A DNA stretch of 64,000 bases from Mobula birostris (GCF_030028105.1 NC_092382.1:806001-870000); one strand, 5' to 3'. Shown: positions 804 to 59,280, numbered from the stretch's first letter. Translations and numbers: made by a program. Notes: generated by a model not told the origin, from the sequence alone.

Positions 804-1714
804 TTAGATAATTCCTATATGAATTAATTGAATAATTGACACGAGTGGATATTTCGCTGCGTTGACGAACTGCTCTCTGAATTTGGACTGAGTTACCCCA
901 TAAATAAAAGTGTTTGTGCAGCAAGTTAATATCATCAGCATGTATCCGGTGTGTTGAAAAATGTATTGAGAGTCATTGTACTTAGTTTGATCCAATCCGG
1001 CAATGACGCTATAAAGGAATTCGGCAACACTCACCGACCACAGGATGATGAAGCTGCCGGAGCTGGTGAGAAGTAAGATCACAGACCTCCTCCTGCTCTC
1101 CATCTCCGGGTCACTGCGGTTCTCCGCCTTGCTCTGACCCCTCAGCCCCTTACGGACGCGACTGGTCACTAGGATGTGTCTGACTGTCAGAGCGTTGAGC
1201 ATTAGTATAAATACGAACGGGAGCAATGGCGTTAGAACTGTCGAAAGCCACCTATATCCCAGCCACCCAGGACCTGTATAGTAATCCGACTTTGTAATAC
1301 AGTCCCAGGGTACATTGTCAATCACTTTCACAGGAAAATATACAAAGGCGTTGGGCACATTTTTAAAACCAAGCAAAACACCGATTGTTGTCAGAATCAC
1401 AGCCGCAGTTTTCCCGGTGCAATACTTTGCTTTCTGCTTCTGGCAACAGATGGCGACAAACCGATCAAATGTAAAAGTGACAGTGAACCAGACAGAACAG
1501 TCAGTGGCTGTCTGTCCCAGGGCAGAGATCACACTGCATACGGGGGTGATGTCCAGGAAAGTCCCAGGGAAGTAATAATAACTGACCCGCCACAATATCA
1601 CCGCAAAGACGATGGTCATTAGATCCGCCGTTGCCATGGCCACCAGGTAGTGAGTGGTGCAGGTAGAGAGACCGCACTTTCCCCGGAACAGGATCACAAT
1701 CGCCACAATATTCA
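804..1714 (-). CDS. GPR139/GPR142-like class A GPCR, gene A, exon 2 (325 aa when spliced to 3114-3180)
   Basis: 7-TM ORF with N in TM1, LVAMATADL (TM2), FTFDRFVAIC (DRY variant), LLPF (TM5), FIILW (TM6) and CCTNTFIY (TM7). Acceptor ccgcag|TG at 1715/1714, stop at 804-806. Confidence 0.92.
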
Positions 1715-3113
1715 CTGCGGGAATAGCAAAAGGAATGAGTGAATTATTATCTCGCCAGTCCATGGTTCTCAGTGTAGAGATTAGCTGTAAATTGAGAACA
1801 TTAACACTTTCCAGACAACTGGCTTCTGGAACTTTCTAAGGTGTAATGCGGGGTTGGCAGAAGCCTCACACACGTGCACTCTGGTGAAAAGGGTGCAGTA
1901 CTCGAGGAGGAGCAGAATTTGGGAAGGAGGCTCTGTCAACTGATCGCTCAGGGTGCTTTGCGGGTATCAATTTCCAACACCCACCAATAGGTTTTCGACT
2001 GATTTCTAATGCTTGGTCGCTCGGCAACTTGCTCAGCGATTCTGATTGCCACGATACCGTCACCTGTGTTCCGGCATTCTCCGCATGCGCAAAACCCCGC
2101 TCCCACACCGCTGCCTATTTACAAATTTCCCAGCAAAGTTCATTCTCCCGTTGTATTATCTTCCTATCCTCCTCGACATCTGTTTGTCACCCGCCCACTG
2201 TGGCCTCCCTTGGCTAGCTACTTATAAGTTCGGTAGCCACTCTTGCGGGTGTTCCTTCACGTTGTTTTCAAGGAATCTGAAGAGAAAGTTCAATTTTCGC
2301 TTTTAAACGTTTTGCCTGACTCGCTGAACGTTTCAAATATGTTACTAGTTAGTGTTTAATCCATCCAATTTCCAAAGGAGAAAACACAATATGTACATCA
2401 AAGCATGTGCCTCTGTTAGGGTTTGCTCCAAATTACTGCAGCGTTATTCTAAATATTTTGATGTTTGTTCTTTCAGATCGGAGAATTGCATGAAACTTAT
2501 CCCGTCTGAACTCTAACTGACACCAGCAGGGCTCTCTCTTAATTCCCTCTTCATTTCTCTGATAATGGGACGTGGAAAAATTCCTGGTTCACTATATCGC
2601 GTGCAGACCCTAATTTGAATCGTGGAAACTCCCGATGGTTCGAGGTGATAGCTACCGTGCTCTCCTGAATCTCACCGGGGATTCGCTTCTCAAGTTCCCT
2701 TCAAACTTGCAGTAATTTCTTAAAACACAAAGCAATACCTTTAAATGTGTATTTAACGCATGTTGCGCTATTGATTCGGGATAACACAAAGCAGCCGGTG
2801 AAGGTGCCGAGCGCACCGGATTATCGGAGGTTATTTTAACAACAGCTTTGCAATGATAATCCAAAACTGCTTGTCATGATTCAGCAAAATGTAGCCTTTT
2901 CCCCGATATCCCACTCTATATCAGTTTCAGCTGCCGGTTTATTTTCAGCGGAGGCCACAGCTGAAACTTCAAGGGAACTTCTGAACGAACACAAAGTTTT
3001 TGTCACAACGTCTGCAGCGCACTCACTGATACACCCGCGATCATGTCGGGAAAGGAACAAGTCCAAAGACCGCGCACACAGAACTGCAAATATTAGTTCG
3101 CCTATGTTCTTAC

Positions 3114-3180
3114 CAGGAACACCAATAACGGCAATGACCATGTACCATATCTTTCTCACACTGTAAAATGTTTCAAGCAT
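3114..3180 (-). CDS. Gene A exon 1 (MLETFYSVRKIWYMVIAVIGVP, phase 1)
   Basis: ATG at 3180, donor G|GTAAGA at 3114/3113. The same 67-nt exon precedes all four intact paralogs and completes TM1 (IGVP-VN). Confidence 0.9.
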
Positions 3181-3420
3181 TCTGTGAAAGATTCAGCCTG
3201 ACTCCCAGCTGCCCGCGATCTCGCTGAAGAAACTCTGAGCTGATGAATCTCCACGCTCATTCATTTCTACTCGCTCCAGCACGCTGAATATTCAATACTA
3301 CACAAGGCTGACGTATCTTACAACAGCCGGGGTAAAAAATAAACATGATGTCAGTCAAGTAAAGTCCCAATTGTGATGAGGTGTGACTAGCTTGATGCGA
3401 AATTGCAACATCGCAAAGAC
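3181..3420 (-). promoter_or_regulatory. Conserved 5' UTR/proximal promoter of gene A
   Basis: About 240-bp block alignable with the same region of genes B, C and D. The TATA position reads TAGAAAT (3263-3269). Confidence 0.6.
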
Positions 3421-5616: not shown

Positions 5617-6773
5617 ACATAGTCATACTCATAGTCATAGTCATACTTTATTGATCCCGGGGGAAATTGGTTTTCGTTACAGTTGCACCATAAATAATTA
5701 AATAGTAATAAAACCATAAACAGTTAAATAGCGATATGTAAATTATGCCAGGAAATAAGTCCAGGACCAGCCTATTGGCTCAGGGTGTCTGACCCTCCAA
5801 GGGAGGAGTTGTAAAGTTTGATGGCCACAGGCAGGAATGACTTCCTATGACGCTCTGTGTTGCATCTCGGTGGAATGAGTCTCTGGCTGAATGTACTCCT
5901 GTGCCCAACCAGTACATTATGTAGTGGATGGGAGACATTGACCAAGATGGCATGCAACCTGGACAGCATCCTCTTTTCAGACACCACCGTCAGAGAGTCC
6001 AGTTCCATCCCCACAACATCACTGGCCTTACGAATCAGTTTGTTGATTCTGTTGGTGTCTGCTACCCTCAGCCTGCTGCCCCAGCACACAACAGCAAACA
6101 TGATAGCACTGGCCACCACAGACTCGTAGAATATTCTCAGCATCGTCCGGCAGATGTTAAAGGACCTCAGTCTCCTCAGGAAATAGAGACGGCTCTGACC
6201 CTTCTTGTAGACAGCCTCAGTGTTCTTTGACCAGTCCCGTTTATTGTGAATTCGTATCCCCAGGTATTTGTAATCCTCCACCATGTCCACACTGACCCCC
6301 TGGATGGAAACAGGGGTCACCAGTACCTTAGCTCTTCTCAGGTCTACCACCAGCTTCTTAGTCTTTTTCACATTAAGCTGCAGATAATTCTTCTCACACC
6401 ATGTGACAAAGTTTCCTACCGTAGCCCAGTACTCAGCCTCATCTCCCCCGCTGATGCATCCAACTATGGCAGAGTCACCAGAAAACTTCTGAAGATGACA
6501 AGACTCTGTGCAGTGGTTGAAGTCCGAGGTGTAAATGGTGAAGAGAAAGGGAGACAAGACGGTCCCCTGTGGAGCCCCAGTGCTGCTGATCACTTTGTCG
6601 GACAGACAGTGTTGCAAGCACACGTACTGTGGTCTGCCAGTCAGGTAATCAAGAACCCATGACGCCAGGAAAGCATCCACCTGCATCGCTGTCAGCTTCT
6701 CCCCCAGCAGAGCAGGGCGGATGGTGTTGAAAGGACTGGAGAAGTCAAAAAACATGACCCTTACAGTGCTTGC
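5617..6773 (-). mobile_element. Young 5'-truncated Rex1/Babar LINE (RT and C-terminus)
   Basis: ORF 5772-6812 has [29 protein letters not shown] (decayed YADD-type motif) and YKYLG. AATAAA plus (TATGAC)n tail. Absent at the paralogous site upstream of gene C (~32570). Confidence 0.9.
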
Positions 6774-6824
6774 TGTCATGCGACTCACGCTGGGGGAAAA
6801 ATAATGGATCATAAAGTATCAAAT

Positions 6825-7996
6825 GACCACCTGAACAAAACAAACATCTACTTTAGGATGCTTTTCGTCGACTATAGCTCGGCATTTAATACCATCATTC
6901 GCACTAACCTGATTGAGAAGTTGCAGAACCTGGGCCTCTGTACCTCGCTCTGCAATTGGATCTTCGACTTCCTAACCGTAAGACCACAGTCTGTGAGGAT
7001 TGGTGATAACATGTCCTCTTCGCTGACGATCAACACTGGACACTCGGGGGGTGTGCTTAGCCCACTGCTCTGCTCTTTATATACACATGACTGTATGGCT
7101 AGGCATAGCTCAAATATCATCTATAAATTTGCTGACGATACCACAATTGTTGATAGAATCTCAGGGTGTGACGAGCGGGCGTACAGGAGTGAGATATGCC
7201 AACATGAGGAATGGTGCCGCAGCACAGCCCGGCACTCAACGTCGGTAAGACGAAAGAGCTCGTTGAAGACGGAACACATACAAATCCTCACAGAGGGATC
7301 AGAAGTGGTGAGAGTGAGCAGTTTCAAGTTCCTGGGTACCAAGATCTCTGAGATCTAACCTGGTCCCAACATATCGATGTAGTTATGAAGAAGGCAAGAC
7401 AGCGGCTGTAGTTTAGTAGGAGTTTGGACAGACTTTGCATGTCAACAAATACACTCAAAAACTTCTATAGCTGTACCGTGGAGAGCATTCTGACAGGCTG
7501 CATCAATGTCTGGTATGGAAGGGCTACGGCAGAGGACCGAAAGAAGCTGCAAAGAGTTGTAAATCTAGTCCGCTCCATCTTGGGTACTAACCTGCAAAGT
7601 ACCCAGGGCATCTTTAGGGAGCGGTGTCTCAGAAAGTCACCATTATTAAGGACCTCCAGCACCCAGGGCATGTCCTTTTCTCACAGTTACCATCAGGTCG
7701 GAGGTACAGACGCCTGAAGGCACCCACTCAGCGATTCAGGAACAGCTTCGTCCGCACTGCCATCCGTTTCCTAAATGGACATTGAATCTTTGGACAATAC
7801 CTCATTTCTGTTTTTCTGTTTCTGCACATTTTTATCTATTCAATACGTATATGTATACCATAATTGATTTACTTATTAAGTATTGTGTATTTATTTATCA
7901 TTGTTTTTTCTCTTTGCTAGATTATGTCCTGCATTAAACTGCTGCTGCTAAGTTCACATCACATGCCGGTGATAATAAAGCTGATTCTGATTTTGA
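6825..7996 (+). mobile_element. 5'-truncated Rex1/Babar LINE, second subfamily, frameshifted
   Basis: [24 protein letters not shown] and FKFLG. Ends in gataataaagctgattctgattttga. Confidence 0.88.
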
Positions 7997-9456
7997 TGTG
8001 TGTGGCCAAAACAGGCCAATCCATGGAAGTGAACAAAGTAGAGGTATTTGTTGATGTGGTGGTCTGATATCCGCGTCACTTCTCAAACACGTGCAGGATT
8101 AAATATCCCATGCTTGAGTTGGCCGCGAAATGCGTGTAGACTAAATATCTGCTAGATTCCTCTCACTCTCCAAAAACATTAAAAAAGGAAAGGTAACACA
8201 CCGGGAAAAGTGGCCTACGCTGGCCAGATGTTTCACTTGATCCCGATGCACGTTTCTGACTTGAGGTCATCACTTCTCCGATTGTTGGTCCCCACAGAGT
8301 TGCCTGTACTCCTGAAACCCTCTATTGCTAGCCTTTTCCTTATCATATCAATCTCTTATGTTTTGAATGCTATGACGCAGGCGCATCTGACTGACGTTTG
8401 TCAGCTTCTCACTGGATCTGACACAAAGCTGCAAACAGTGTTGTTTTGTGGTTCTTTCCCACAGATGTGATCCGGGCAATTTACTTTGTCCTTTCCACCT
8501 AGACTGGTTCAAACCAGATCAACCAGGGTAGCCAGACAGCTGGCCCAGGTGACCAGATCACAGACTGTTCCTTCCGGAAGCCTGTCATTTAACAATGCAA
8601 GCAGCGGCTTATATGAACATGGTCTCAGGTTCAGAAGGTCGTCAGCACAAATAATAAAACAAAGGTTCAGTTGCTCTAATTAATTCTTCACTGAGCAAGA
8701 AATAGTTCACCAAATGGCGGCTGCAAGAGCAGCCTCACAAAATGGAAGATTCAATTCTGGCAACTACCTGCCAAGATCAAAGACTGTTTCTTTCTTTATT
8801 TCCATTGCTCTTGCAGGGTGCAGCTGCTACTGGACAACATCCCTATCTGTCTACCCGTCCATCCGTATATCTGTGTGTCTGTCTATCCGTCTGTCTGTTT
8901 CCCACCATCTGATATGTTATATATTGTGACTTTGATGGAATGGATTACACAATGAGATGAAGAACGAGAAGCAGTTTTGGAGACAGAAAAGCTTCGCCCG
9001 CAATCCAACTGGACAGATATGTTTTGACATGGGTACGATGTCAGTCTACAAATCAGAGGTCACTTCAAGGCCATTTGTAATGACCGAATGGATTTCATAA
9101 TCCATTAACTGGCGAGTCGACAGAGTGCAACTACTCAGCTGCTGTCGCAATTGGAGGCTGCATTGATGACGTATTCACAAGTGGACATAGAGTGCAAAAC
9201 GTCAGTGAAGGTTCACGAGCAATGGCTGAGTACAGTGAGTGGACAATCAACTCAAATGAACATAATCAAGTTGGAAACTGTCACTGACAGACAATGGGAT
9301 AATATAACAAAAGAATATTTCCAGACAGGATGAAGATTAACATTGTATCCTGCACTCCACAATCTGGAAGGACTTCACAAAGATCATCAGGCTCCTACGT
9401 CCCCGTGACGTTCGTCTGAAAACTGATGCAATATTTAACAAGGAAGAAGACGATGT

Positions 9457-10998
9457 TTAGACCATAAGACCATAAGACAAAGGAGCAGAAGTCGGCTATT
9501 CGGCCCATCGAGTCTGCTCCGCCATTTTATCATGAGCTGATCCATTCTCCTATTTAGTCCCACTCCCCCGCCTTCTCACCATAACCTTTGATGCCCTGGC
9601 TACTCAGATACCTATCAATCTCTGACTTAAATACACCCAATGAATTGGCCTCCACTGTTGCCCGTGGCAACAACTTCCATAGATTCACTACCCCCTGGCA
9701 AAAAAAAAAAATCTTCGCATCTCTGTTCTGAATGGGTGCCCTTCAATCCTTAAGTCATGCCCTCTCGTACTAGACTCCCCCATCATGGGAAACAACTTTG
9801 CCACATCAATTCTGTCCATGCCTTTCAACATTCGAAATGTTTCTATGAGGTCTCCCCTCACTCTTTTAAACTCCAAGGAATACAGTCCAACAGCGGACAA
9901 ACGATCCTCATATGTTAACCCTCTCATTCGCGGAATTATTCTAGTGAATCCTCTCTGTACTCTCTCCAACGTCAGCACATCCTTTCTTAAATAAGGAGAC
10001 CAAAACTGCCCACAGTACTCCAAGTGAGGTCTCACCAGCGCCTTATAGAGCCTCAACATCACATCCCTGCTCCTATACTCTATTCCTCTAGAAATGAATG
10101 CCAACATTGCATTCGCCTTCTTCACCACCAGCTCAACCTGGAGTTTAACCTTACGGGTATCCTGTACGAGGACTCCCAAGTCCGTTGCACCTCAGAACTT
10201 TGAATTCTCTCCCTATTTAAATAATAGTCTGCCCGTTTATTTTTTTCTGCCAAAGTGCATAACCATACACTTTCCAACATTGTACTTCATTTGCCACTTC
10301 TCTGCCCATTCTTCCAATCTATCCAAGTCTCTCTGCAGACTCTCCGTTTCCTCAGCACTACCGGCCCCTCCACCTATCTTCGTATCGTCAGCAAACTTAG
10401 CTACAAAGCCATCTATTCCATAATCCAAATCGTTGATGTACAATGTAAAAAGAAGCGGCCCCAACACTGATCCCTGTGGAACACCACTGGTAACCGGCAG
10501 CCAACCAGAATAGGATCCCTTTATTCCCACTCTCTGTTTCCTGCCAATTAGCCAACGCTCTATCCACGTATGTAACTTTCCTGTAATTCCATGGGCTCTT
10601 ATCTTGTTAAGTAGCCTCATGTGTGGCACCTTGTCAAAGGCCCTCTGAAAATCCAAATATGCAACATCCACTGCATCTCCCTTGTCTAGCCTACTGGTAA
10701 TTTCCTCAAAAAATTGTAATAGGTTTGTCAGGCAGGATTTTCCTTTAAGGAAATCATGCTGAGTTCTGCCTATCTTGTCATATGCCTCCAGGTACTCTGT
10801 AACCTCATCCTTGACAATCGACTCCAAGAACTTCCCAACCACCGATGTCAAGCTAACAGGTCTATAATTTCCTTTTTGATTCCTTGCCCCCTTCTTAAAT
10901 AGCGGAGTGACATTTGCAATCTTCCAGCCCTCCGGAACCATGCCAGAATCTATCGACTTTTGAAAGATCATTGTTAATGCCTCCGCAATCTCCGCTGC
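9457..10998 (-). mobile_element. CR1 LINE, 5'-truncated, relatively young
   Basis: ORFs 10237-10971 and 9688-10179 carry NYRPVSLTS, YLDFQRAFDKVPH, SGVPQGSVLGP, KFADDTK and LVRPHLEYC. Short tandem 3' tail near 9460-9478. Confidence 0.93.
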
Positions 10999-12365: not shown

Positions 12366-12379
12366 TATAAACCTGGGCG

Positions 12380-13060: not shown

Positions 13061-14149
13061 TGTGTGTCCCCGTTTACGAAAGGCAGGTGCCAGTGCAGAG
13101 TGACGTACACTAAAATACGATTTTTTTCTCTATTTTTCACAAGTGTTAGGTTTGTGTTGTTCCATAAATAGTTAAAATGACAAATCGAGATCACCCACCC
13201 CATCCCTCCATCCAGTAGCTCCCCCTACCGGCCGAACTCCGCAATCCCATGCTGTCATTCCACCCTTCCTTTGACCTCCAGGCTACGGAATCACCGAGCC
13301 CAGGAGCACCGCCAAACCCACGAGTGCCGGGACTTCTGATCACACACCTACCGGGCCGGCTCTCCCCCATGGATCACGGGGTTGAGGTAAATCTTCAACC
13401 TTCTCTCAGCTTCCAACAGCCTCTTCGGCCTCAGGACCTATCGACCCGAAACGCCTCGCAAGCGAGGCCCATCTGCGCACACACTCGGGACGCCCCTGCG
13501 CCCTCAGCACCCTTATAGCCTGGGACAGAGGCAGGAGGTCGGGGGCGTTTTGTGCTCGGATGAGGGTCGGCACCGGCGAATCACCGTATTGAATAGGGAG
13601 TAGAAGGGAGCGGGAGGGTGGAGGAGGAATCCGGCTACTTCACGGTACAAGGACAGCGACACAGGCCGGATTCTCCCTACACACTTCCAGTCCGGCCCGG
13701 CTCTGGGCTGCATGCGCTTCGGCTGCGACTCTAAATCCGACTGCAGACTGGAAAGAGGGCTGCCTGTATCCCGTCTGCGTCCTCCCCGGGGCACTCCGTC
13801 TCTCGCCGGCAGGCAGGCACCGTCCCGTTCGGGAAGGACAAGGGGCGCCACAGAGGGCAGGGAAGGCGATTTCTGCGGTTGGCCGGAGAGGAGGAGAGAG
13901 TGAAGGATAGGTCGGAGGACGGGATGCAGGTGGGGGTGTTCAGGAGAGAAAGAGTGGGTGGTCGCGAAGATGGAGATCGCGAAAAGGGGTGGAGAGTGTG
14001 ATCAATGTGACAGGGAGGGAGTGGTCAGACCGAGGCGGAAAGGGCTGGATGGATGTTTTAGAGTGATTTTGCAATGGAAGCTGTAAAATCCTAAAAGGAC
14101 GTGCTGGTATGAAAACTCTCTAATGACTCACGGTACATAAGCCTTTTCT

Positions 14150-16790: not shown

Positions 16791-17319
16791 TCTGCTGAAA
16801 TGCCTGCCAGCTGCTCCTTCCAGTTTACTTTGGCCAGCTCCTCTTTCATACCACTGTAATTTCCCTTACTCCACTGAAAGACTGCTACATCAGACTTTAC
16901 TTTCCACTATGAAATTTCAAGTTGAACTCAATCATATTGGGTCTGGAATATGCACATATATATTTGTCTCGTTGTGTTTTGTAAATGCGAGGACTGGGCC
17001 TCAAAGCCACAGATTCGCCTGGTAGGAATCGGTCGTCTAGGTAACAGTCTACAGATGATATCGGTAGACTGGGGATTCCAATGTTAAACTGCATCTATCC
17101 TGCGTCGTTGTGTGTTTTACTGATATTCTATACGGGGTTGAGACTCTCATTACGTGATAATGATCTTGTGTGGGCTTACTGTGAGTGAGTGTTGGTAACG
17201 TGTGCTCGCACCTTGACCCCGTGGCAAAGCTGTCTCTTTTGGCTGTATTCATGAGTATTAATATACGGATAAATGACAATTAGACTTAAATTGAACTGAA
17301 TTGAATTAAGAAGTCTGTG

Positions 17320-18514: not shown

Positions 18515-19425
18515 TTAGATGTGTTGTTTATTAATTAGTTGAATAATTGACGAGAGCGGATATTTCGCTGTGCTGATGAACTGCTCTCTGAACTTGGACT
18601 GAGTCACCCCATAAATAAACGTGTTTGTGCAGCAACTTAATATCATCAGCATGTATCCGGAGTGTTGAAATATATATTCCGAATCGTTGTAACTATTTTG
18701 ATCCAATCCAGCAATGGTGTAATAAAGGAATTCGGCAACTTTTACTGACCACAGGGTGATGAAGCTTCCGGAGATGGTGAGAAGTAAGATCACAGACCTC
18801 CTCCTGCTCTCCATCTCCGGGTCACTGCGGTTCTCCGCCTTGTTCTGACCCCTCAGCCCCTTACGGACCCGACTGGCCACCAAAATGTGTCTGACTGTCA
18901 GAGCGTTGAACAGCAGTATTAACACGAAGGGGAGCAATGGCGCTAGAACGGTAGAAAGCCAGCTATATCCCACCCACCTGCGATCCGTATAGTAACTCGA
19001 TTTACGAATGCAGCCCCAGGGTATATTATCAATTACTTTCATTGGTCGATACATAAAGAAGTAGGGCACATTTTTAAAACAGAAAAGAACGCCGGTTGTT
19101 GTCAAAACTACAGCCGCAGTTTTCCCCGTGCAATATTTTGTTTTCAGCTTCTGGCAACAGATGGCGACAAACCGATCAAACGTAAAGGTGACAGTGAACC
19201 AGACAGAACAGTCTGTGGCAGCCCTTAAGGGGACATAGTTCACACTGCATACGGCGGTGATGTCCAGAAACGTCCCGGGCAAGTAATAATTAAAGACCCG
19301 CCCCAATATAACCTGAAAGATGATGGTCAGTAGATCCGCCGTTGCCATGGCCACCAGGTAGCGAGTGGTGCAGGTGGAGAGGCCGCACTTTCCCCGGGAC
19401 AGGATCACAATCGCCACTAAATTCA
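18515..19425 (-). CDS. GPR139/GPR142-like GPCR, gene B, exon 2 (325 aa when spliced to 20762-20828)
   Basis: Intact 911-nt exon, acceptor tctccag|TG, same motifs as gene A. Confidence 0.92.
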
Positions 19426-27215: not shown

Positions 27216-27219
27216 TTTC

Positions 27220-27945: not shown

Positions 27946-28007
27946 GATTACGTTTACTGGGTTCATTGTTTATGAAATTCAGAAAATGAATCTCAGTCCT
28001 GTACGTA

Positions 28008-29305: not shown

Positions 29306-29496
29306 NNNNNNNNNNNNNNNNNNNNNNNNNNNNNNNNNNNNNNNNNNNNNNNNNNNNNNNNNNNNNNNNNNNNNNNNNNNNNNNNNNNNNNNNNNNNNNN
29401 NNNNNNNNNNNNNNNNNNNNNNNNNNNNNNNNNNNNNNNNNNNNNNNNNNNNNNNNNNNNNNNNNNNNNNNNNNNNNNNNNNNNNNNNNNNNNNNN
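29306..29496. other. Assembly gap (N run)
   Basis: Run of Ns. Confidence 0.99.
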
Positions 29497-35455: not shown

Positions 35456-35669
35456 TTTTGACACGTACAAGTCGCATGAGGAGCTCCGCAGACCAGGTAG
35501 CATTTATGGAAATGAATAACTAAATAGTCGATGCTTCGGGCCGAGACGCTCCTCAGAGCTGGAGAGGAAAGGGTTAGCTGCTTCCACAACAGCCATTATG
35601 AAACCGAGAGTTCAGCCTGAGAGGGTTTCACAACTATATTCACTGACTGCTCCGTTATGTCGTGTCGTC

Positions 35670-35904
35670 ATTGAGATTTTGCAATTTCGTGTCAAGCTAT
35701 TCCTACATCATCGCAATTGGGATTTCACTTGAATTACATTATTTTTATTTTTATCCCAGCTGTTGGAGACACGTCAGCCTTGTGTAGTATTGAATATTCA
35801 GTGTGCTGGAGCGAGTATAAATGAACGGCCGTGGAGATTCATCAGCTCAGAGTTTCTTCAGCGAGATCGCGAGCAGCTGGAAGACAGGCTGAATCTCACA
35901 CAGC
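35670..35904 (+). promoter_or_regulatory. Conserved proximal promoter/5' UTR of gene C
   Basis: CAGCTG 35757-62, ACGTCA 35771-76, palindrome TGAATATTCA 35791-800, TATAAAT 35816-22. Confidence 0.62.
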
Positions 35905-35971
35905 ATGCTTGAAACATTTTACCTTGTGAGGAAGATATGTCACATGATCATTGCCGTTATTGGTGTTCCTG
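35905..35971 (+). CDS. Gene C exon 1 (MLETFYLVRKICHMIIAVIGVP)
   Basis: ATG at 35905, donor G|GTGAGA. Confidence 0.9.
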
Positions 35972-37051: not shown

Positions 37052-37962
37052 TGAATTTAGTGGCGATTGTGATCCTGTCCCGGGGAAAGTGCGGCATCTC
37101 CACCTGCACCACTCGCTACCTGGTGGCCATGGCTACGGCGGATCTACTAACCATCGCCTTTCAGGTCATATTGTGGCGAGTCAGTTATTATTACTTCCCC
37201 GGGACTTTCCTGGACATCACCCCCGTATGCAGTGTGATCTACGCCGTGGGTTTGGCTGCCACAGACTGCTCTGTCTGGTTCACCGTCACTTTCACGTTTG
37301 ATCGGTTTGTCGCCATCTGTAGGCAGAAGCTGGAAGCTGAGTATTGCACCGGGAAAACTGCGGCTGTGATTCTGATAACAAGCGGTGTTTTGTTCTTTTT
37401 TAAAAATGTGCCCATCTTCTTTATATTTCGTCCTGTTAACGTGATTGACAATATACCCTGGGACTGTATTCGAAAGCCTGCCTACTTTGCGGATCCCGGG
37501 TGGGTGGGATATAGAATGTTTTCCACCGTCCTAACGCCATTACTCCCGTTCGTGTTAATACTCCTGTTCAACGCTCTGACAGTCAGACACATCCTAGTGA
37601 CAAGTCGCGTCCGTAAGGGCCTGAGGGGCCATACCAAGGGAGATAACCGCAGTGACCCGGAGATGGAGAGCAGGAGGAGGTCTGTGATCTTACTTCTCAC
37701 CATCTCGGGCAGCTTCATCATCCTGTGGTCGGTGAGAGTTGCCGAATTCCTTTATAACACCATTGCCGTATTGGACCCATTTAATTACAACGTTACGGAA
37801 TACATAGTTGAACACTCCAGTTACATACTGATGTTATTAAGTTGCTGCACAAACTCGTTTATTTATGGGGTGACGCAGACAAAGTTCAGGGAGCAATTCA
37901 TCAGCGCAGCGAAATATCCTCTCACGTCAATTACTCAAATAATTAACAAATGCAATATCTAA
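37052..37962 (+). CDS. GPR139/GPR142-like GPCR, gene C, exon 2 (325 aa spliced)
   Basis: Acceptor ccccag|TG at 37051/37052, intact 911-nt exon ending in TAA. Confidence 0.92.
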
Positions 37963-49106: not shown

Positions 49107-51764
49107 CTGGAGAAAGAGAATGGAATGACATAAACATTATGATTCGCAATCCGGCACCCCCAACTTAATCGCCCTCCACTATCCGTCAAGGGTAAGGTTG
49201 AGTTACTGTTAACCTCAGATTCACAGCTATCGGAATCCAATGATTCACCAATCACGAGCATTAAAGAATTTCGTCTGATATCCATCGTGAACAGTGTATT
49301 TATTCTTCTGAAATGTTGCCTCATCGTCTTGGACTGCATGGTGCAGGATACATATTTCCAGTACCCAGACTGTCAATCATAGAATCATAGAAATCTACAG
49401 CGCATTACAGGCCCCTCGGCCCACAATGTTGTACCAACCATGTGGACTCAGATGGAGATTATCTGCAACATTTGCAAATCCTTTATCTTGTTCAGTGTGA
49501 ATGAATGCTCAGGTCATTGTTTGAATGAAGCAACTTCGTGACAAAGCGTCCAGTCCACTTAATCCAATTCCCGTCACAGTCCCGCCACATCAGAAGCCAA
49601 GAGGGTGAACATTCCTCTATTGCGAGTAGGTGTTTCTTAAGCAAGGAGCACAAGTTGCACACGATACACCAATTTTTGCCTCATAATGTCGAGACGAAAC
49701 TGGAGTAGGAAAACATTACTCTGACAGTGGCAAAAAGTTACTTGCTGAGAATATCAACTGACCATCTCTGAATCTAACTGGTTGCCCTATTTACACGTGA
49801 ACAATGAATAGTGTTCCAGGTGACCTGGGAATTGGCACACGAGGAATTTCCAATATATTATGCAAATCGCTATTTTGGTAGCATTTCGCTTTTAACTTTG
49901 CCCCATACATTACAGTTGTCTCATTTGTGACCAATAAACATCAACCTAATTGTTCACAGGTTGTTAGAGGGAAAAGATGGAATAGACGTTGAAGTCAAAG
50001 ATCTAAATATTTCGAACACTAATTCTGGTGGCATAAGGCAGGAAGTTGCAAATGTTATATTAGTAAATGACACCGCACAAGTGTGAAGCTTTTGAGAAGA
50101 CATCGGTGGCAGAATGATCAGGTTAGAGTAAAGGGCTGCGCTGGAATAAGCAGGCAAGCTCTTTTGCCAATGGCCATTAAGGGCAATATCAGGAACAATA
50201 CGGAGATGAGGCATCTGCCGGATATACGCAACCGGGATCAATCAGTTCCTTGTTCAGTATAGGGATCATGACAGTGCCTGAGTAGGACAAGGGTTGGCCA
50301 AGAAATACTCCTTACTGAAAAGATAACAGAGAAACCGAAACGATTGATTTTAAAAGTGTGGCTGCAGGGAATAGAGACCGTCCGCATAAATGGTGATCTA
50401 TCTGTAGAACCACAGGAAATGGTGGAACTGTTAAATGAACGCATCTCATCTACAATTACACGTGAGACGGACATTGTGAGTTCACTGCAGGGTTCATTGT
50501 CTGTGAGAGCAGATCAACACTGGAAGAGTTGAAGTTCTGGAGATCTTCATGAATATGGTCTCCAAATTTGAGGAAGGACATTCTTACTACTGAGAGAGTG
50601 CAGCATAGGTTCACGAGGTTAATTCCCGGGATGGCGGGACTGTCATATGTTGAAAGATTGGAGTGATTGGGCTTGTGTACGCTGGAATTTAGTAGGATGA
50701 GAAGGGATCTGATTGAAACATATAAGATTGTTAAGGGATTGGACACGCTAGAGGCAGGAAACATGCTCCCGATTGAGGGGAAGTCCAGAACCAGAGGCCA
50801 CAATTTGAGAATAAGGGATAGGCCATTTAGAACGGTGTTGAGGAAAACTTTTTCACCCAGAGAGCTGTGGATCTGTGGAATGCTCTGCCTCAGAAGGCAG
50901 TGGAGGCCAATTCTCTGGATGCTTTCAGGAAAGAGTTAGATAGAGCTCTTAAAGATAGTGGAGTGAAGGGATATGGGGAGAAGGCAGGAACGGGGTAAAG
51001 ATTGTGCATGATAAGCCATGGTCACAGTGAATGGCGGTGCTGGCTCGAAGGGCCGAATGGCCTACTGCTGCGCCTATGGTCTATTGTATATTGTCTATCC
51101 TGATATCCTCGCCTCCTCGATCCTCTGGGGGAACAAAGCAGAGACTGCTGTGCCCTTGGAAGCGATCTTTGTGTCCTCGTTATCAAACAGTGATGAATGG
51201 GAAGGATGGCGGATGGACAATGTTGTGTCGCAATGTAAGACACAGATAAGCCGGGAACTACTGTAGATGAGCTTCACAACAGTGCAGGGTCAGACAATGG
51301 ATGGGATTCAGATGGACAGGATTTACCTGAAGAGACAAGTGGTGTCGCCGGCGGGGGGTCAGTTTGACCGGGTGGGCAATGCAGTGACAGGTGGAATACA
51401 GTGTATGAAGGTGTGGGGTAGCACTTAGGAAAGAAAGATTAATGCGCAGAGAAGTTTCTAATTGCGGAGGTAATTCAGAAAAAAAGAGATTCATATGAAG
51501 TGACGAGTCGCAGCTCTGGATTTACTGAAGGCTAACGTGCAGGGCAATTGCTTAGTAAAGAAGCGAATGCAATGCCGGCAGAGGAGTCGCATTTGATGCC
51601 ACCGATGGCGTGGAGGACCGGTACGAGGGTGAAGTTAAAGAAAACAGTTTGATTGTTAATTCGTTAGTGGGTTCACAGTTTCTTGGTGAATAGACTTGGG
51701 TTGAGAAAGAGATTACCTGAGAAAGAACAGCAGAAGAGCTCGATGGAGCGAATGAGCCGATTGT

Positions 51765-51965
51765 GCTTCTGTATCCTGTGGTTTAATGTTCTGATTCCGA
51801 GTCGTTCGACCGTCTGTATTGACCATCGGGCCTTTGCCCAAAGTTTTAATAAACTGTATATCGACAGCTTCTGCATCCTGTGGGTTAATGCCGTTTCATT
51901 CGACCGTCAGTATTAACCATCGGGCCTTCGACCGAAGCCTCAATAAACTGTCTATCGACAGCTTC
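51765..51965 (-). repeat. Tandem repeat, ~100-bp unit x2 (mirror of 38714-39020)
   Basis: Same unit as the left arm, one copy fewer. Confidence 0.8.
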
Positions 51966-52715: not shown

Positions 52716-53626
52716 TTAGATATTGCGTTTGTTAATCATTTGAATAATTGACGTGAGAGGATATTTCGCTGCGCTGATGAACTGCTCTCTGAACTTTGTC
52801 TGCGTTACCCCATAAATAAAAGTGTTTGTACAACAACTTAATAACATCAGCATGTAACCGGTGTGTTCAACTATGTATTCCGTAACGTTGTAATTATTCT
52901 GATCCAATCCGGCGATGGTGTAATAAAGGAATTCGGCAACACTCACCGACCACAGGATGATGAAGCTGCCGGAGATGGTGAGAAGTAAGATCACAGACCT
53001 CCTCCTGCTCTCCATCTCCGGGTCACTGCGGTTATCTCCCTTGTTCTGACCCCTCAGGCCCTTACGGACGCGACTTGTCACTAGGATGTGTCTGACTGTC
53101 AGAGCGTTGAACAGTACTATTAACACGAACGGGAGTAATGGCATTAAAACGGTAGAAAACATTCTATATCCCACCCACCCGGGATCCTCAAAGTAAGCGG
53201 GCTTTCGAATGCAGTCCCAGGGTATGTTGTTAATCACGTTAACAGGACGAAATATAAAGAAGATGGGCATATTTTTAAAACAGAGCAGAACGCCGATTGT
53301 TATCAGAACCACAGCCGCAGTTTTCCCGGTGCAATACTTTGCTTTCAGCTTCTGGCAACAGATGGCGACAAACCGATCAAACGTGAAAGTGACGGTGAAC
53401 CAGACAGAACAGTCTGTGGCAGCCAGACCTACGGCGTAGATCACACTGCATACTGGGGTGATGTCCAGGAAAGTCCCGGGGAAGTAATAATAACTGACCC
53501 GCCACAATACGACCTGAAAGATGATGGTTAGTAGATCGGCCGTTGCCATGGCCACCAGGTAGCGAGTGGTGCAGGTGGAGAGGCCGCACTTTCCCCGGGA
53601 CAGGATCACAGTCGCCACTAAATTCA
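52716..53626 (-). CDS. GPR139/GPR142-like GPCR, gene D, exon 2 (325 aa when spliced to 54935-55001)
   Basis: Acceptor ccccag|TG at 53627/53626, intact 911-nt exon. Confidence 0.92.
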
Positions 53627-54700
53627 CTGGGGGAACGGCAAAAAAGAATGAGTGAATTGCTGTCTTGCCCCTCCATGGGCTGGATTAGCTGAAAATTGAC
53701 AACAATAAAACATTGCGAACAACTCATTTCTGGAGTTTTAAAAGTTGTAAAACGGTACGGTGCTCGGTACTGGAATAGGAACACTGTTTTGGAAGTAGGC
53801 ATTGCCAACTGATCACGGAGGGCGCTTTGTAGAAATCAATATCATTCTCCCATCATCGACTGATTTGTAAAGCCTGGATACCTCGTCCGCTTTCTCAGCA
53901 ATGGTGATCGCCACGTTCTCGTCAGCTAAACTCTGCCACTCTCCGCGTACCGAGAAGCTCGGTCCCTCCACTTCTTTCCATTGACAAATTTCAATGTAAA
54001 TTTAGTTTTCTATTTCGACTGCCTTCGCTTCCCCCTCGGTTTCAGTTTGCACACAGGAGCCTCGGCTGGCATGGTTCTTTTAAATTCTGCAAGTAATATT
54101 TATCGGGGCTCCTATACCCATTCCTTTCTGATCGGTGACAATGTGTCCGATCAGAAAGTTCCAATCTTCTCTGACCGGATGAACGTTTCAGATATTTTGC
54201 TCGTTAGTGCTTAAAACAACCAATTCCTAAAGCGCAGTTACATCGAAACATCTGCCTGTTTTAGATGTCGCTCCAAATCACTGCAGTGTTTCTCTAAATG
54301 ATTCGATGCTTATTGTTCCAGAGCCGCCTATGGCCTTTACCTTACCCTGTCTGACCTCTAACGGAAACCGCTGTATTGGCTCAAAACTCCCGCATCACTT
54401 CACGGAACAGGACATGGAAACAAACCCTGGTGCGCTAAAGCGCGCACAGACCCTGACTTAAAGTTGGAAACTCCGGATGGTTTGGAATCTAAGTCACGTG
54501 ATCTCTACCTCTCTCCCCTGAATCTCACCGGCGATCCGCTTCCCGCGTTTCTTTCACATTTGCAGCAATTTCTTAAAGCACAGCGTAATGCCTTTAGATT
54601 TGAATTTAAAGCAAGTTACACTATTAATATGGAATAATACCAAGTAGCCCATAAAGCTACCGTGCGATTATAAAGGATTACATTAACAGTGGCATCACAA

Positions 54701-54851
54701 GGCATCCGTTAGTCTTGCGAGACCATGGATCTGCGACTGGAAAATCTTCACTCTCCAGGTTGCAGACCTGGGCAAGGTTGTATGGAAGACCAGCAGCTGC
54801 CCATGCTGCAAGTCTCCCCTCTCCACGACACCAGTGTTGTCCAAGGGAAGC
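54701..54851 (-). mobile_element. Short retroposon (RTE-related SINE-like) in the gene D intron
   Basis: 10-bp TSD GGCATCACAA at 54691-54700 and 54852-54861. Empty site in the gene C intron (~36045). Family and orientation are tentative. Confidence 0.75.
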
Positions 54852-54934
54852 GGCATCACAACGCTGTCAGTAACTGAACGAGTCCAAACACTGTATACAC
54901 AGAACAGCAAAAGATAGTTCTCCTAAGTTCTTAC

Positions 54935-55001
54935 CAGGAACACCAATAACGGCAATGATCATGTGCCATATCTTTCTCACGCGGTAGAATGTGTCAAGCA
55001 T
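54935..55001 (-). CDS. Gene D exon 1 (MLDTFYRVRKIWHMIIAVIGVP), not in the ORF track
   Basis: ATG at 55001, donor G|GTAAGA at 54935/54934. Confidence 0.9.
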
Positions 55002-55235
55002 GCTGTGTGAGATTCAGTCCGTCTCCCAGCTGCCCGCGATCTCGCTGAAGAAACTCTGAGCTGATGAATCTCCACGCTCATTCATTTATACTCGCTCCGG
55101 CACACTGAATATTCAATACTACACATAGGGAGACGTGTCTTCCAACAGCTGGGTAAAAATAAACATGATGTAATTCAAGTAAAATCCCAATTGTGATGAG
55201 GTACGGATAGCTTGAAACAAAATTGCAAAATCTAA
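55002..55235 (-). promoter_or_regulatory. Conserved proximal promoter of gene D with TATA box
   Basis: TATAAAT at 55084-55090 (minus), TGAATATTCA and CAGCTG. Confidence 0.6.
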
Positions 55236-55480
55236 CTGATGAAATAATTCGATCCGAGAAGACAGTAAATATGGTTGTGAAACACTCTCAGGCTAAACTC
55301 TCGGTTTCATAATTGCTGTTGTGGGTGTAGTTAACCCATTCCTCTCCAGCTCTGAGGAACGTCTCGGCCCGAAAGGTCGACTGTTTGTTTGCTGATTTCC
55401 ATAGATGCTACCTGATATGCTGAGCTCCTCAATCATATTGTACGTGCATCAAATTAATACAACCCCTGACATGGTAAATC

Positions 55481-55938
55481 TTCCTCTTCTTCTTGCGCCC
55501 TTAACTCCTGGTGGAGTCGTCGGGGCGCCGTCATGACAAGCTTTGCACCAGCTTTTCGGTGTGCTCATCATGAGGCGTGTCTTGCGCATCCGAAACCTGG
55601 CGGAGCCCATCCCTCTCCAGGTTTAACCACAGCCGATTTCCCCCAGCTAGGTGGCTCGCCTTGGTCGTGAGCACTTGGCCGTTATAGTTCATCTGTGAAC
55701 CTCTCCGTCCCGGCCGGGAACTTTATCATGGAAGCCCAGTGGTGCCTGTTAACACCACCCCTCACGTGGTTTAGCCCGCCAGCTGAAGCGGTTTACCGGG
55801 GTATGGCGCTTGGAGCCAACACGTGAGAGATTTAGGAGATGGATGAGGACCAGTGATACCCGTCCACCCTGTCTGGTAGGGAGCAGCATGCCAGATATCA
55901 AAGGTACCACCTCTGTCCAGAGCCGCCTGTACCCCTAT
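55481..55938 (-). mobile_element. Non-autonomous ~460-bp retroposon (RTE/Vingi-like) with (GAA)n tail
   Basis: 10-bp TSD ATGGTAAATC at 55471-80 and 55939-48, 3' tail AAGAAGAAGAGGAAG on the minus strand, no long ORF. Confidence 0.8.
55761..55935 (-). ncRNA. HDV-like (double-pseudoknot) self-cleaving ribozyme motif
   Basis: P1 GGGGTAC (55935-29)/ATACCCC; P2 CTCACGTGTT/ACCACGTGAG; P3 GGC/GCC with L3 TCCAAGC; GG for P1.1; P4 CCGC/GCGG; J4/2 GCTAA. Confidence 0.75.
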
Positions 55939-56125
55939 ATGGTAAATCAGCTCCCATGAAATTTCACATCCTAATAACGCATAGTAATTCAATGCCCATC
56001 CACATGGCTCCCGAAATGATGCAAATGCTTAAACCGACAGAGAATCTACATTGATTACAGTTGTACCAACAGTGACAATTGTTTTGCGGCTGTACTGAAT
56101 CGGTAGCGTTGTTGACCGCGAGGTA

Positions 56126-58050
56126 CAGCGGTGATAGCAAGTGTGTGAAACCTGTAGAATTTTCTCTATTGCAGCACAAATATGACCTAAAATGTGTACA
56201 GACTTTCATGTACGTTCTAAAACTAGACTAAGCGAACACAATTAAATAAATAACACAAAAACATTGTACTTGTTAATTTATTTACCGTGACTAATGATCC
56301 AATTTTACATGTATTTGCTGGAAAGGTATGTGAACCTCTGGGTGAACGCGTCCTACAAAAGCTATTTGAAATCAAGTGTTCCAATCAATGAGATAGGACT
56401 GGAGGTGTCGGTTGTGGAAATTGCCTGCCCTATTAAAAACGAAACACAAAATCAGGTTACTGATAGAGCCCGCTCTTCTCAAAGAGGATCTGTTTATCGA
56501 CATCATGCTTCGATCGAAACGAATTTCAGAGAACCTTAGAAGAAGAATTGTAGAGATACATGACGCTGGAAATGGCTACAGAAGTATTTCTAATTACCTG
56601 AGTGTTCAGAAGTCCACAAATAGAGAAACTGTCAACAAGCAGAGGAAAGTCGGTGCTGTTGCTACTGTACCTGCGGGTGTGCATTCTGCAAAGGTCACGC
56701 CAAGCGAACAGCGTGCAGTGCTGAAGGAGGTGAGAAAAAACACAAGGGTAACAGCAAAAGATCTGCAGAAACCTACAACTTGCGACTCTGTCCATGTGAC
56801 TACTACAAGAAAAACGCTGAATATGAATGATGCTTATTGAAAGCACCACGGGGGAAACCACTGCTCTCCAAACAAAAAAACTAATAACATTGCTGCACGT
56901 CTCAAGTTTGCAAAAGGCGACCTCGATGTTCTACAATGCCTCCGGGACAATCTTCGGTGGATAGATGAGAAAAAAAAGAGGTGAACATTTTGGTGACGGA
57001 GGATGAGAGGTGACCTGACAGAGGTGTATAAGATGATGAGAGGCATTGATCGTGTGGATAGTCAGAGAGTTTTCCTCGGGCTGAAATGGCTAACACGAAG
57101 GGGCATAGCTTCAGGGTGCCTGGACACAGGATAGGGTTATCACACAGAGAGCGGTGAGTGCGCGGAATGCACTGCCTGCGACGGTGCTGGAGGCGATACA
57201 ATGGGGCCTTTTAAGGGACTGTTAGATAGGCACAAGTTGCTTAGAAAAAGTGCTATGCAGTTGGGTAATTCTAAGCAGGTTACATGGTCGGCACAATACT
57301 GTGGGCCTATGGGCCTGGAATCTGCTGTAGATTTCTATGTAAATGCTCATTGCATGTCTGGAGGGAAAAGGGCCCTGCACACCAACGCCAATACACCGTC
57401 CCAGGTTTGGTGCCGCAGGGCCTAGACAGCCTGCAACCACAGAGGGAAAAACGAATTCAAAATTGTACCAAGACATTTTGCAGAGGGACTCTAGTGTCGT
57501 AATCCATCACCTGAGGCTTAATAGAAGTTGAACAATGTAACAAGCATTGATCCGAAAGATATGAGTAATTCAACAACAGCATGGTATACAAAGAAGAAAA
57601 TTCTTGTCCTGTAATGGCCGAGTCAAAGTTCTGAACTTAATCCGTAGAAATGTTGTGGATGGACGTGAAGTAAGTAGTCATGCAAGGAGGCCTAGCAACG
57701 CCCCAGAGTTGAAGCGGCTTTGTCGGGAGGAATGACCTAAAATTCCTCCAGGTCAATGTGCAGGACTGTTCAATTGCTACCGGAAACGTTTGTTTAAAGG
57801 TATTGCTGTACAAGGTGGTCACACCTGTATTGAAATCAAAGGTTCACATACTTTTTTTTCCCAACAAATATATGTAACGTTAGATAATATTTTCCTTAAA
57901 TAAATGAACAAGTATAATATTTTATGTTTTTATTTAATTGGGTTCTCTTTATCGAGTTTTAGGACCTATGTGAAGATCGGATCAAATTTTCGGTCATATT
58001 TATGTAGAAAGAGATCAAATTGAACAGGGTTCACAAACTTTCCAGCACCG
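56126..58050 (+). mobile_element. Decayed near-full-length Tc1 transposon (IR/DR-type long TIRs)
   Basis: TA TSDs at 56124-5 and 58051-2. ~210-bp TIRs with an internal repeat (GTGAACC). Transposase N-terminus MLRSKRISENLRRRIVEIHDAGNGYRSIS and WPSQSSELNP near 57615. Empty site upstream of gene B (~22210). Confidence 0.9.
56993..57340 (+). mobile_element. CR1 3' fragment nested in the Tc1 transposase
   Basis: RRMRGDLTEVYKMMRGIDRVDSQ plus CR1 3' UTR. Confidence 0.8.
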
Positions 58051-58376
58051 TAGGTAGTCATATGTACCTATTTGATATTCTGAATTGCACTTTTTCTGCA
58101 AAGATAACACGACATTGTATTTTCAAGGTTAAATCAGTGAAACTGGCCCCATCCGGAACTGGATCGCTGTTGTTCCCGACGATTACCCACATCTCGTCAT
58201 ATCTCCACAGCGGGGAAGGCAGGTCTGAGACAGTGTGACCCGTGCTTGGTGATAGATAAGCAGCTGCTCACCGCCTCTGGCGCTCATGGCCATTGGCGGA
58301 AACCCGAACCCGTGTCCATTCCCGGAGTATGTGTTCAATAATTCCCAGTGTCTGTTCTCTGTCTCTCTCCCTGCAG

Positions 58377-59280
58377 TGAACTTAGTGGCGATTGTGATCC
58401 TGTCCCGGGGAAAGTGTGGCCTCTCTACCTGTACCACCCGCTACCTGGTGGCCACGGCAGCGGCGGATCTACTGACCGTTGTCACCGAGGTCTTTGTGCG
58501 TCAAGTCATAAATTATTACTTTCCGTGGAATTTTTTGAACACTACCCCGATGTGCAGAGTTGTCGAGGTACTGAGGTTCACAGCCACATACTGTTCTGTC
58601 TGGTTCACCGTCATGTTCACTGTTGATCGCTTTGTCGCTATTTGCTGTCAGAAACTAAAAACAAAATATTGCACCGGGAAAACTGCGGCTGTGGTTCTAA
58701 CAACAACCGCCGTGCTGTCCTTTCTGAAAAAATGTTCCCCGTTACTTCCTCTGGGAACCCAGAGAGATCATCGAGAATGTAACATGGTTCTGCAAGCTCA
58801 TGGAATATACTTTCACTGACCCCGGATGGGTAGTATACGATTAGCTTGATATAGTTTTGAATCCGTTCATTCGTTGTGATCCTGTTACTCAACGCTCTGA
58901 CATTCAGGCACATTTTAGTGGCCAGTCGGGTCCGTAAGGGACTGAGAGGTCAGGGCAAAGGCGAGAATCGCAGTGACCCGGAGATGGAGAGCAGGAGGAG
59001 GTCTGTGATCTTACTCCTCGCCATCTCCGGAAGCTTCATCACCCTGTGGCTGACACTAGTTGTAAATTTCATGTATTATGAGATCAAAGGAATTGGATTC
59101 GATTTCAATGATTCTGAGGTGATCTTTCACAACGCCAGGATTTTGCTGAAGAATTTCAGCTGCTGCACGAGCACATTTATTTACGCTGTGACTCAGTCGA
59201 AATTCAGGGAGCAGGTGATCAGCGCGGTGAAATATTCGTTCAACTGGGTGCGACAGGTCATTAATAAAGCCGCGTCCTGA
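58377..59280 (+). pseudogene. GPR139-like GPCR pseudogene (exon 2 only, second subfamily)
   Basis: Acceptor ctgcag|TG, +1 A in the run at 58727-32, TGG>TAG at 58842-44 and a small deletion near 58870. No exon 1 found upstream. Confidence 0.88.

Follow-up and report, generated by a model that had tools for sequence, protein, structure and literature searches.

Six related loci in a stretch of 64,000 nucleotides (nt) from the ray Mobula birostris (GCF_030028105.1 NC_092382.1:806001-870000, here called the window) raise a simple question: what are these genes, and what would a ray use them for? All six are copies of a class-A G-protein-coupled receptor (GPCR) gene, and nearly all of the best 120 of their 1788 protein matches are auto-named 'probable G-protein coupled receptor 139'. 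The most far-reaching reading, at a probability of about 0.4, is a putative family of chemoreceptors for small waterborne molecules, comprising about a hundred or more genes and built by sharks and rays from an orphan gene related to GPR139. Its broader part, in which the copies between them sense many different small ligands and feed one shared signalling pathway, is probable from the comparison of sequences; a nearly invariant cytoplasmic face beside pocket residues that vary by copy is what is read in this way. External chemosensation, whether in olfactory, taste or solitary chemosensory cells, is tentatively put forward as the single most likely use of such a putative repertoire.

With the 319-amino-acid (aa) open reading frame (ORF) at 37003-37962 as tblastn query, six loci and no more were found in the window, a count that applies outside its runs of N. 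Copies c1, c2, c3 and c5 are intact, while c4 and c6 are pseudogenes. Their features are as follows.

804-1763, minus strand: c1 locus by tblastn
804..1714, minus strand: c1 exon 2, 911 nt, residues 23/24-325 plus stop, 100% identical to P0021
1715..3113, minus strand: c1 intron, 1399 nt, GT..AG
3114..3180, minus strand: c1 exon 1, coding part, 67 nt, outer half of transmembrane helix 1 (TM1)
18515-19465, minus strand: c2 locus by tblastn
18515..19425, minus strand: c2 exon 2, 911 nt, 100% identical to P0423
20762..20828, minus strand: c2 exon 1, coding part, 67 nt
37003-37962, plus strand: c3 locus by tblastn, its ORF being the query
35905..35971, plus strand: c3 exon 1, coding part, 67 nt
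37052..37962, plus strand: c3 exon 2, 911 nt
48232-49119, minus strand: c4 locus by tblastn
48232..49119, minus strand: c4 pseudogene, three frame changes and one in-frame stop
52716-53675, minus strand: c5 locus by tblastn
52716..53626, minus strand: c5 exon 2, 911 nt, 100% identical to P0002
53627..54934, minus strand: c5 intron, 1308 nt, with an abundant repeat inside at 54699-54850
54935..55001, minus strand: c5 exon 1, coding part, 67 nt
58334-59271, plus strand: c6 locus by tblastn
58286..59271, plus strand: c6 pseudogene, two frame changes and at least one premature stop

Database models of relatives, 325 aa long, open with a peptide that is absent from the long ORF, and searching for this peptide revealed, ahead of each intact copy, a 67-nt first coding exon that has an ATG and a GT donor. 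Exon 2 is 911 nt in all four, lacks internal stops and is preceded each time by a pyrimidine tract and CAG; the introns run GT..AG and measure 1399 (c1), 1336 (c2), 1080 (c3) and 1308 nt (c5). Exon 1 ends with one spare base (G), whose codon is finished by the TG that opens exon 2, so that the product has 22+1+302 = 325 aa. This length was checked by the arithmetic and by 100% identity of exon-2 translations to RefSeq proteins, which holds for three of the four (c1 = P0021, c2 = P0423, c5 = P0002); among the proteins returned by the searches there was no exact RefSeq model for c3. The preliminary description of this stretch had counted six paralogs in 60 kb, four of one 67+911 nt, 325-aa architecture and two dead; exactly six loci, the common architecture of c1, c2, c3 and c5, and the frame changes and stops of c4 and c6 all agree with it. 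Of the N-terminus of about 10 aa that it also described, the shortness stands and the length does not, the modelled TM1 starting at residue 2.

The two pseudogenes are about 60-64% identical to any family member (c4 about 60%), which makes them old, dead lineages. No exon-1-like sequence was found near c4 or c6, and in c6 an ATG of its own and a longer N-terminus run straight into TM1. The last 49 nt of the intron resemble coding sequence in the intact copies (1715-1763 in c1, 37003-37051 in c3, 53627-53681 in c5 and 19426-19474 in c2). In c1 and c3 an in-frame ATG lies 49 nt before the acceptor and opens a TM1-like peptide (MDWRD.. / MEWRD..), which a HMMER alignment sets against the outer TM1 of human GPR139. 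Single-exon ORFs of 319 aa are thereby available at 804-1763 (c1) and 37003-37962 (c3), and two M. hypostoma RefSeq models start at the late-intron ATG (P0001, P0420). A single-exon gene model of 319 aa was not kept: the late-intron ATG of c5 is out of frame through a 1-nt insertion and c2 has GTG. The two-exon model was taken as the common one because all four intact copies share the 67-nt exon 1 with its GT donor. The late-intron ATG of c1 and c3 is a possible alternative start, and the coding-like stretch as a whole may be either that or, as a comparison with c6 would allow, a relic of an older intron-less N-terminus.

The wider family is large. At least 1788 distinct proteins were matched at E<=1e-5 with the c3 ORF as query, and the best 120 of these 1788 are all from elasmobranchs, in 11 species (Heterodontus 51, Pristiophorus 21, M. 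birostris 16, M. hypostoma 14, and others); 41 of these 120 are exactly 325 aa long and 57 fall within 323-326 aa. An exhaustive phmmer search of P0002 against 1.84 billion representatives gave 117 clusters (50% identity) at E<=1e-30, and a rough inference from such counts would put the gene number at about a hundred or more per genome. Atlas neighbours carry automatic names only, including clusters called 'putative FMRFamide receptor'. Intact 325-aa members have been kept in both sharks and rays. In a 71-row tree, made of 59 of the 120 matches (300-360 aa), the four window genes and eight outgroups, with Heterodontus thinned at random to about 35% and Pristiophorus to about 50%, the ray sequences form one clade (95), and single-species clusters appear for Pristiophorus (100), Cetorhinus (99) and Heptranchias (97). 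The window genes are not mutual nearest relatives, except c3 and c5. Each intact copy has a counterpart in M. hypostoma at 92-96% identity (c1 92.5%, c2 96%, c3 95%), and near-identical copies lie elsewhere on the M. birostris chromosome (99.7% to c5; 99.3, 98.7 and 97.7% to c1).

Duplications both old and very recent, found beside two dead copies, are the pattern of birth-and-death evolution. The preliminary description had proposed exactly this, and the two dead copies in six, the M. hypostoma counterparts, the extra copies at 97.7-99.7% and the species- and order-specific shark clades back it. It had added that only a few copies genome-wide would speak against a sensory repertoire, and the copy number found is far from few. 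High copy number, tandem clusters, pseudogenes and lineage-specific clades, the marks of a chemoreceptor-like repertoire, are all present, with the six copies of the window lying within 59 kb.

Mammalian GPR139 is a single-copy gene whose product is activated by L-Trp and L-Phe. Human GPR139 is the best match among solved structures, and a weak one for a single sequence (33 bits, E 3e-7), little ahead of the cholecystokinin-B and mu-opioid receptors. When a profile was built from the family and its closest relatives, GPR139 scored 100.9 bits (6.8e-28) and the next match, neurotensin receptor 1, 72.5 bits (2.9e-19); CCR1 and CCR5, both chemokine receptors, followed at about 1e-17. Of the characterised receptors GPR139 stands closest by a clear margin, and the family can be placed in the GPR139/GPR142-related clade in a broad sense. 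GPR139 is likewise the top match for P0232, P0257 and P0262.

Two single-copy groups of relatives give the family its setting. One, around coelacanth P0232, includes catshark, sawshark, sturgeon, bichir, teleosts, amphibians, turtles and squamates. Shark orthologs within it (catshark P0277, 66%; sawshark P0284) mark it as a paralog separate from the elasmobranch family. It belongs to the same GPR139-related superclade, has a short N-terminus and similar length, and differs in its conserved pocket. The other group, around Pleurodeles P0226, holds frogs, salamanders and a caecilian at 66-74% identity and a sturgeon relative at 46%; each listed species occurs once among 25 matches of P0226, which makes the gene look single-copy, and after its own group the next matches of P0226 are the elasmobranch family, at 32-33% identity (32-34% between the group and the family). 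A careful IQ-TREE analysis of 38 hand-picked rows, drawn up without true GPR139 or GPR142 sequences, recovers the elasmobranch family (98/94), the amphibian and sturgeon group (100/100) and the P0232 group (97/99), and a split joining the first two (100/98) leaves the P0232 group outside. Consistent with this, the alignment has a DPEM..RRR motif in the third intracellular loop (ICL3) of the elasmobranch family and the amphibian group, and the P0232 group is without it. The amphibian/sturgeon gene shares with the elasmobranch family the short N-terminus, DRF/DRY, ICL3 RVRxGL..DPEM..RRR and W6.48, and differs in its single-copy look and in a pocket that is invariant across frogs, salamanders and the caecilian. 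The elasmobranch family would so be the co-ortholog of one ancient gnathostome orphan gene.

Orthology to GPR139 itself was rejected on the weakness of the single-sequence match and on the family's own clade with separate single-copy relatives. The preliminary description had likewise called this a lineage-expanded family rather than the GPR139 ortholog, a view supported by the E value of 3e-7, the 1788 proteins and the clade at 98/94. GPR139 and the elasmobranch family both keep W6.48 and a TM7 NPxxY motif without Pro. Identity over the aligned region is low, however, and GPR139 has neither the practically absent tail nor the more than 1000 proteins of the family. Published abstracts call GPR139 a highly conserved gene. 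Its agonist contacts F3x33, H5x43, W6x48, R6x51 and N7x38 were mapped by mutagenesis, according to PMC5430874. Only W6x48 is kept in the elasmobranch family, and the other four are replaced and hypervariable there; c1, c2, c3 and c5 read Q/R/L/L at 3x33 and S/K/R/S at 6x51, with Y at 7x38 and S at 5x43 in all.

Two side observations concern the P0232 group. Its RefSeq models P0280 and P0378 are named 'transmembrane protein 183A isoform'; they are probably read-through models in which adjacent genes are fused, a hint that linkage to TMEM183A is conserved. The names GPR210A/B are given in a 2019 survey (PMC6504862) to non-mammalian GPR139/142-related orphans of coelacanth, gar and other fishes. 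The P0232 group is possibly one of the two, P0232 being not mappable to the Ensembl ids of that survey, and a literature search for the GPR210 name found no follow-up to it.

The predicted protein is a class-A receptor. Pfam 7tm_1 matches c1, c2, c3 and c5 at 68.3-78 bits (cut-off 30.5), and an AlphaFold model on a 48-row alignment (predicted local distance difference test, pLDDT, 83.2; predicted template modelling score, pTM, 0.81) has seven helices, a hairpin in the second extracellular loop (ECL2) and helix 8, with helices at 2-33, 40-70, 79-112, 123-147, 171-214, 225-261, 270-297 and 299-324. The microswitches of the class are present as N24, D53, DRF at 106-108, W248 (75 of 75 members) and NTFIY/NSFIY at 290-294, with Phe for Tyr in DRY and Thr or Ser for Pro in NPxxY as variants. 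Exon 1 codes for the outer half of TM1, which begins at residue 2 of the model, and with the TM1 Asn (1.50) at residue 24 there is essentially no N-terminal tail, a shortness common to the elasmobranch family and the P0226 and P0232 groups. Two conserved Cys would form a disulfide tying the ECL2 hairpin to TM3. An N-x-S/T sequon (NVT or NDS) is conserved in ECL3 atop TM7 (P0002 residues 268-271, the same in c1-c3) and may replace the N-terminal glycosylation site that is impossible without a tail. Foldseek against the PDB returned at least 500 matches, the listed ones all class-A receptors at a TM-score of about 0.7, with GPR139 at rank 3 and no discrimination within class A. The nearest folds and profiles are peptide-type receptors (neurotensin, opioid and somatostatin).

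The evidence that carries the argument is the distribution of variation over this fold. Among 75 family members (those of the 120 matches with 315-335 aa), entropy averages 1.29 bits in the outer half and 0.56 in the inner half (p=4e-16). Hardly any variation touches the cytoplasmic face, including ICL1 GKCGLS, DRF, ICL3 RVRKGLRG..DPEMESRRRS, NTxxY and helix 8. At 25 canonical pocket positions entropy is 1.68 bits versus 0.76 at the other 206 TM positions (p=1.5e-6). The list of positions, a generic one, was settled once the entropy track had already been inspected, which weakens this contrast. Four of six consensus contact positions reach at least 2 bits (p=0.0012). The pattern is opposite in the two single-copy orthogroups, where the pocket is more conserved than other helix positions: 0.75 versus 1.13 bits in the P0232 group (75 of 119, 315-370 aa), which is more divergent overall, and 0.06 versus 0.50 bits in the amphibian group (18 of 18). 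At the GPR139-contact positions the elasmobranch family has at least seven residue types per site; the single-copy groups are identical in 73-75 of 75 and 18 of 18 members at most of them, 3x33 staying aromatic and 6x51 basic. A hypervariable pocket combined with a conserved signalling face is thus found in the elasmobranch family only among the three.

A mechanism can be proposed on this footing. One ancient orphan GPCR gene of jawed vertebrates, related to GPR139/GPR142 and still single-copy in amphibians and sturgeon, would have been duplicated repeatedly to give the elasmobranch family, of which the window would hold one tandem and inverted cluster. New copies would arise by local duplication and others decay to pseudogenes such as c4 and c6. 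A live gene would consist of a promoter of about 240 bp, an exon 1 with 5' untranslated region (UTR) and 67 coding nt, an intron of 1.1-1.4 kb and the 911-nt exon 2. The pocket lining differs from copy to copy, and each receptor could accordingly be imagined to bind a different ligand, presumably a small molecule given the deep pocket and the lack of an ectodomain, while all copies would feed the same G-protein or arrestin pathway through the conserved cytoplasmic face. In many genes, tandem clusters with pseudogenes, lineage clades, compact genes, a variable pocket and a conserved cytoplasmic face, the family resembles the OR, TAAR, T2R and V1R families. It belongs to none of them, its only Pfam matches being to 7tm_1.

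Several results weigh against the chemosensory reading, or against an adaptive origin of the pockets, and are taken together here. The ratio of nonsynonymous to synonymous divergence (dN/dS, or omega; Nei-Gojobori) is 0.31-0.44 at dS 0.15-0.33 in all six pairs of intact copies. The paralogs are under purifying selection, but loose, and the ratio is below 1 everywhere. With four sequences and codons chosen by their variability, omega ranges over 0.30-1.10 for the 51 most variable codons and over 0.20-0.38 elsewhere, and the former range fits relaxed constraint as well as positive selection. Over the exon 2 codons of c1, c2, c3 and c5, dS is also uneven, 0.20-0.45 in the outer half versus 0.12-0.29 in the inner half, and omega consequently shows no consistent difference between the halves. 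The unevenness suggests gene conversion, or nucleotide-level constraint over the segments of the invariant loops. Relaxed constraint or patchy gene conversion, rather than adaptation, may lie behind the variation of the pocket.

Gene structure and control regions offer the chemosensory reading no help either. Genes of the OR, TAAR, T2R and V1R families have a single coding exon, whereas the elasmobranch family has two. The regions upstream of the intact copies are as follows.

3181..3420, minus strand: c1 conserved proximal promoter / 5'UTR, TAGAAA instead of TATAAA
20829..21070, minus strand: c2 conserved proximal promoter / 5'UTR, TATAAA at -90
35665..35904, plus strand: c3 conserved proximal promoter / 5'UTR, TATAAA at -89
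55002..55241, minus strand: c5 conserved proximal promoter / 5'UTR, TATAAA at -89

Roughly 240 nt before the ATG are 86-90% identical among intact copies, against 71-74% for the introns (86% in c3/c5). TATAAA occurs at -89/-90 in three of the four promoters and two E-boxes in all four. The O/E site (TCCCNNGGGA) occurs in none of the four and a TAATTR homeodomain site in one, at -314. A search of the four promoters for O/E, homeodomain, cyclic-AMP response element (CRE) and E-box motifs turned up nothing tissue-diagnostic. The genes are accordingly not of OR type, defined by a single coding exon with O/E and homeodomain sites.

Transcript data bear on the splicing of c5. No sequencing run recorded as RNA contains the c5 gene, and six runs that are RNA only by guess hold at most 0.05 of its words. 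Contigs from four of the six, aligned to c5 at a likeness of at least 85%, cover both exons, together with the 100 nt upstream of exon 1, and leave the intron uncovered except for the repeat at 54699-54850; this exon-only coverage could partly be mere conservation. The contigs are about 85-95% alike to c5 and hence derive from relatives or paralogs. A 282-nt contig from run X3 joins 53626 to 54935 exactly, as the c5 intron was predicted; the interval skipped reads GT..AG in the orientation of the gene, and the shorter arm of the joint has 83 letters. Two more contigs (X3, X6) depart from the sequence within 3 nt of the c5 acceptor. The exact joint shows splicing at this intron, whether the contig stems from mRNA or from a processed copy. 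Long contigs with joints of 20 nt were set aside, being most simply paralogous DNA or unspliced RNA that matches the conserved blocks only. Chemoreceptors are usually rare in bulk RNA, and for that reason one further null result, from catshark, is weak. There the 50 genes reported as most abundant and specific in the 'brain & olfactory epithelium' library include no GPCR (PMC11979771).

The surroundings of the genes bear on how the copies arose. By self-comparison the duplication units are 2.6-5.4 kb long, and each takes in the gene along with some 3' flank and about 300-450 nt of upstream sequence. The inverted pair c3/c5 is more alike in its outer 3' flanks (96.6%) than in the genes (86.4% overall; exon 2 93%, intron 86%), which a recent conversion event, or duplication of part of the flank at a later date, could explain. 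Besides fragments of long interspersed nuclear element (LINE) reverse transcriptase, nothing in the spacers was recognised by Pfam, and Rfam gave no match anywhere in the window at gathering score, nor any at E<=1 within 55500-56200.

5772..10971, no strand assigned: LINE reverse-transcriptase fragments (5772-6812, 6804-7358, 10237-10971), intergenic filler
38808..40863, no strand assigned: c3 3' flank, 2057 nt, 96.6% identical, inverted, to 49920-51965 beside c5

The four runs of N (29306-29496, 34342-34502, 43837-43987 and 44004-44704) are all intergenic; exons, introns and proximal promoters of all copies are free of N, so all the frames are independent of the gaps. Between c2 and c3, and between c3 and c4, order and spacing are taken from the scaffold, and the gaps may hold further copies. 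Long ORFs (300 aa) at 43672-44827 are not real, being runs of X translated across N. Between c1 and c2, 14550-17025 is strongly C/T-rich and of low complexity (GC skew -0.57 at 14001-16000), and this simple-repeat region gives rise to long spurious Ser/Leu/Pro ORFs. The 152-nt element at 54699-54850 in the c5 intron occurs once in the window and has a summed contig depth of up to about 88,750, so it would be a very high-copy repeat or an abundant RNA; ARAGORN found no tRNA in it and Rfam nothing.

Among the alternatives, an internal or immune repertoire survives best, and is nevertheless unlikely. Leukocytes, gut or other internal cells would then sense microbial, dietary or host metabolites or chemoattractants, and the same diversified pocket and shared signalling face would be expected of them. 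CCR1 and CCR5 are among the next-best solved relatives of the profile. Mammalian GPR142 is an internal amino-acid sensor. GPR139 is described likewise in PMC6443882. The absence of O/E sites from all four promoters also fits internal use. We know of no vertebrate immune GPCR family of more than 100 copies, which speaks against it.

A largely neutral expansion, in which segmental duplications in a repeat-rich region multiplied genes of little or no function while the pocket drifted under relaxed constraint, is improbable. Two of six copies are dead, LINE fragments lie in the spacers, omega at the most variable codons rises to 1.10 in some pairs and near-identical copies occur elsewhere on the chromosome, all as it would predict. 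It does not sit well with dN/dS values of 0.31-0.44 in every intact pair, with cytoplasmic motifs, splice sites and promoter that are far better preserved than the introns, or with intact 325-aa members in both sharks and rays.

That the genes are receptors for endogenous neuropeptides, whose number would have grown as well, is very improbable. The nearest folds and profiles are those of peptide receptors, 'putative FMRFamide receptor' clusters occur among the Atlas neighbours, and a review links GPR139 to FMRFamide and allatostatin-B receptors (PMC12208981). Such receptors would have to work with almost no N-terminal tail, however, and species- and order-specific clades would demand a matching turnover of peptide genes. 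That the genes are simply the ray's GPR139 (or GPR142), as the RefSeq name and the best solved-structure match would have it, is contradicted by the weakness of that match, the huge copy count, the separate clade and the loss of the agonist-contact residues, and is hardly credible.

The putative chemoreceptor family for small waterborne molecules meets a particular background. The acute chemical senses of cartilaginous fishes are credited chiefly to V2R-type receptors. PMC6368271 describes these fishes as having few odorant receptors, and a whale shark paper (PMC8455134) speaks of a paucity of GPCRs and odorant receptors in them. A literature search found no paper on an elasmobranch GPR139-like expansion, and supplementary expression tables (e.g. 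of PMC11979771) may bear on these genes. The apparent novelty lies in the recognition of the family itself, in its derivation from a single-copy gene and in the diversification of its pocket; the sequences themselves are already auto-annotated.

The amphibian and sturgeon sister genes, together with the GPR139 structure, supply an immediate frame for deorphanisation. The pocket diversifies exactly where the single-copy relatives are frozen, which would be a clean case of a conserved orphan receptor becoming a repertoire. Even if its use were internal or immune, the family would rank among the largest lineage-specific GPCR expansions in a vertebrate. If the sensory reading is true, it would be a previously unrecognised vertebrate chemoreceptor family, and a class-A family of more than 1000 proteins would change the receptor-poor picture of the chemical senses of elasmobranchs.

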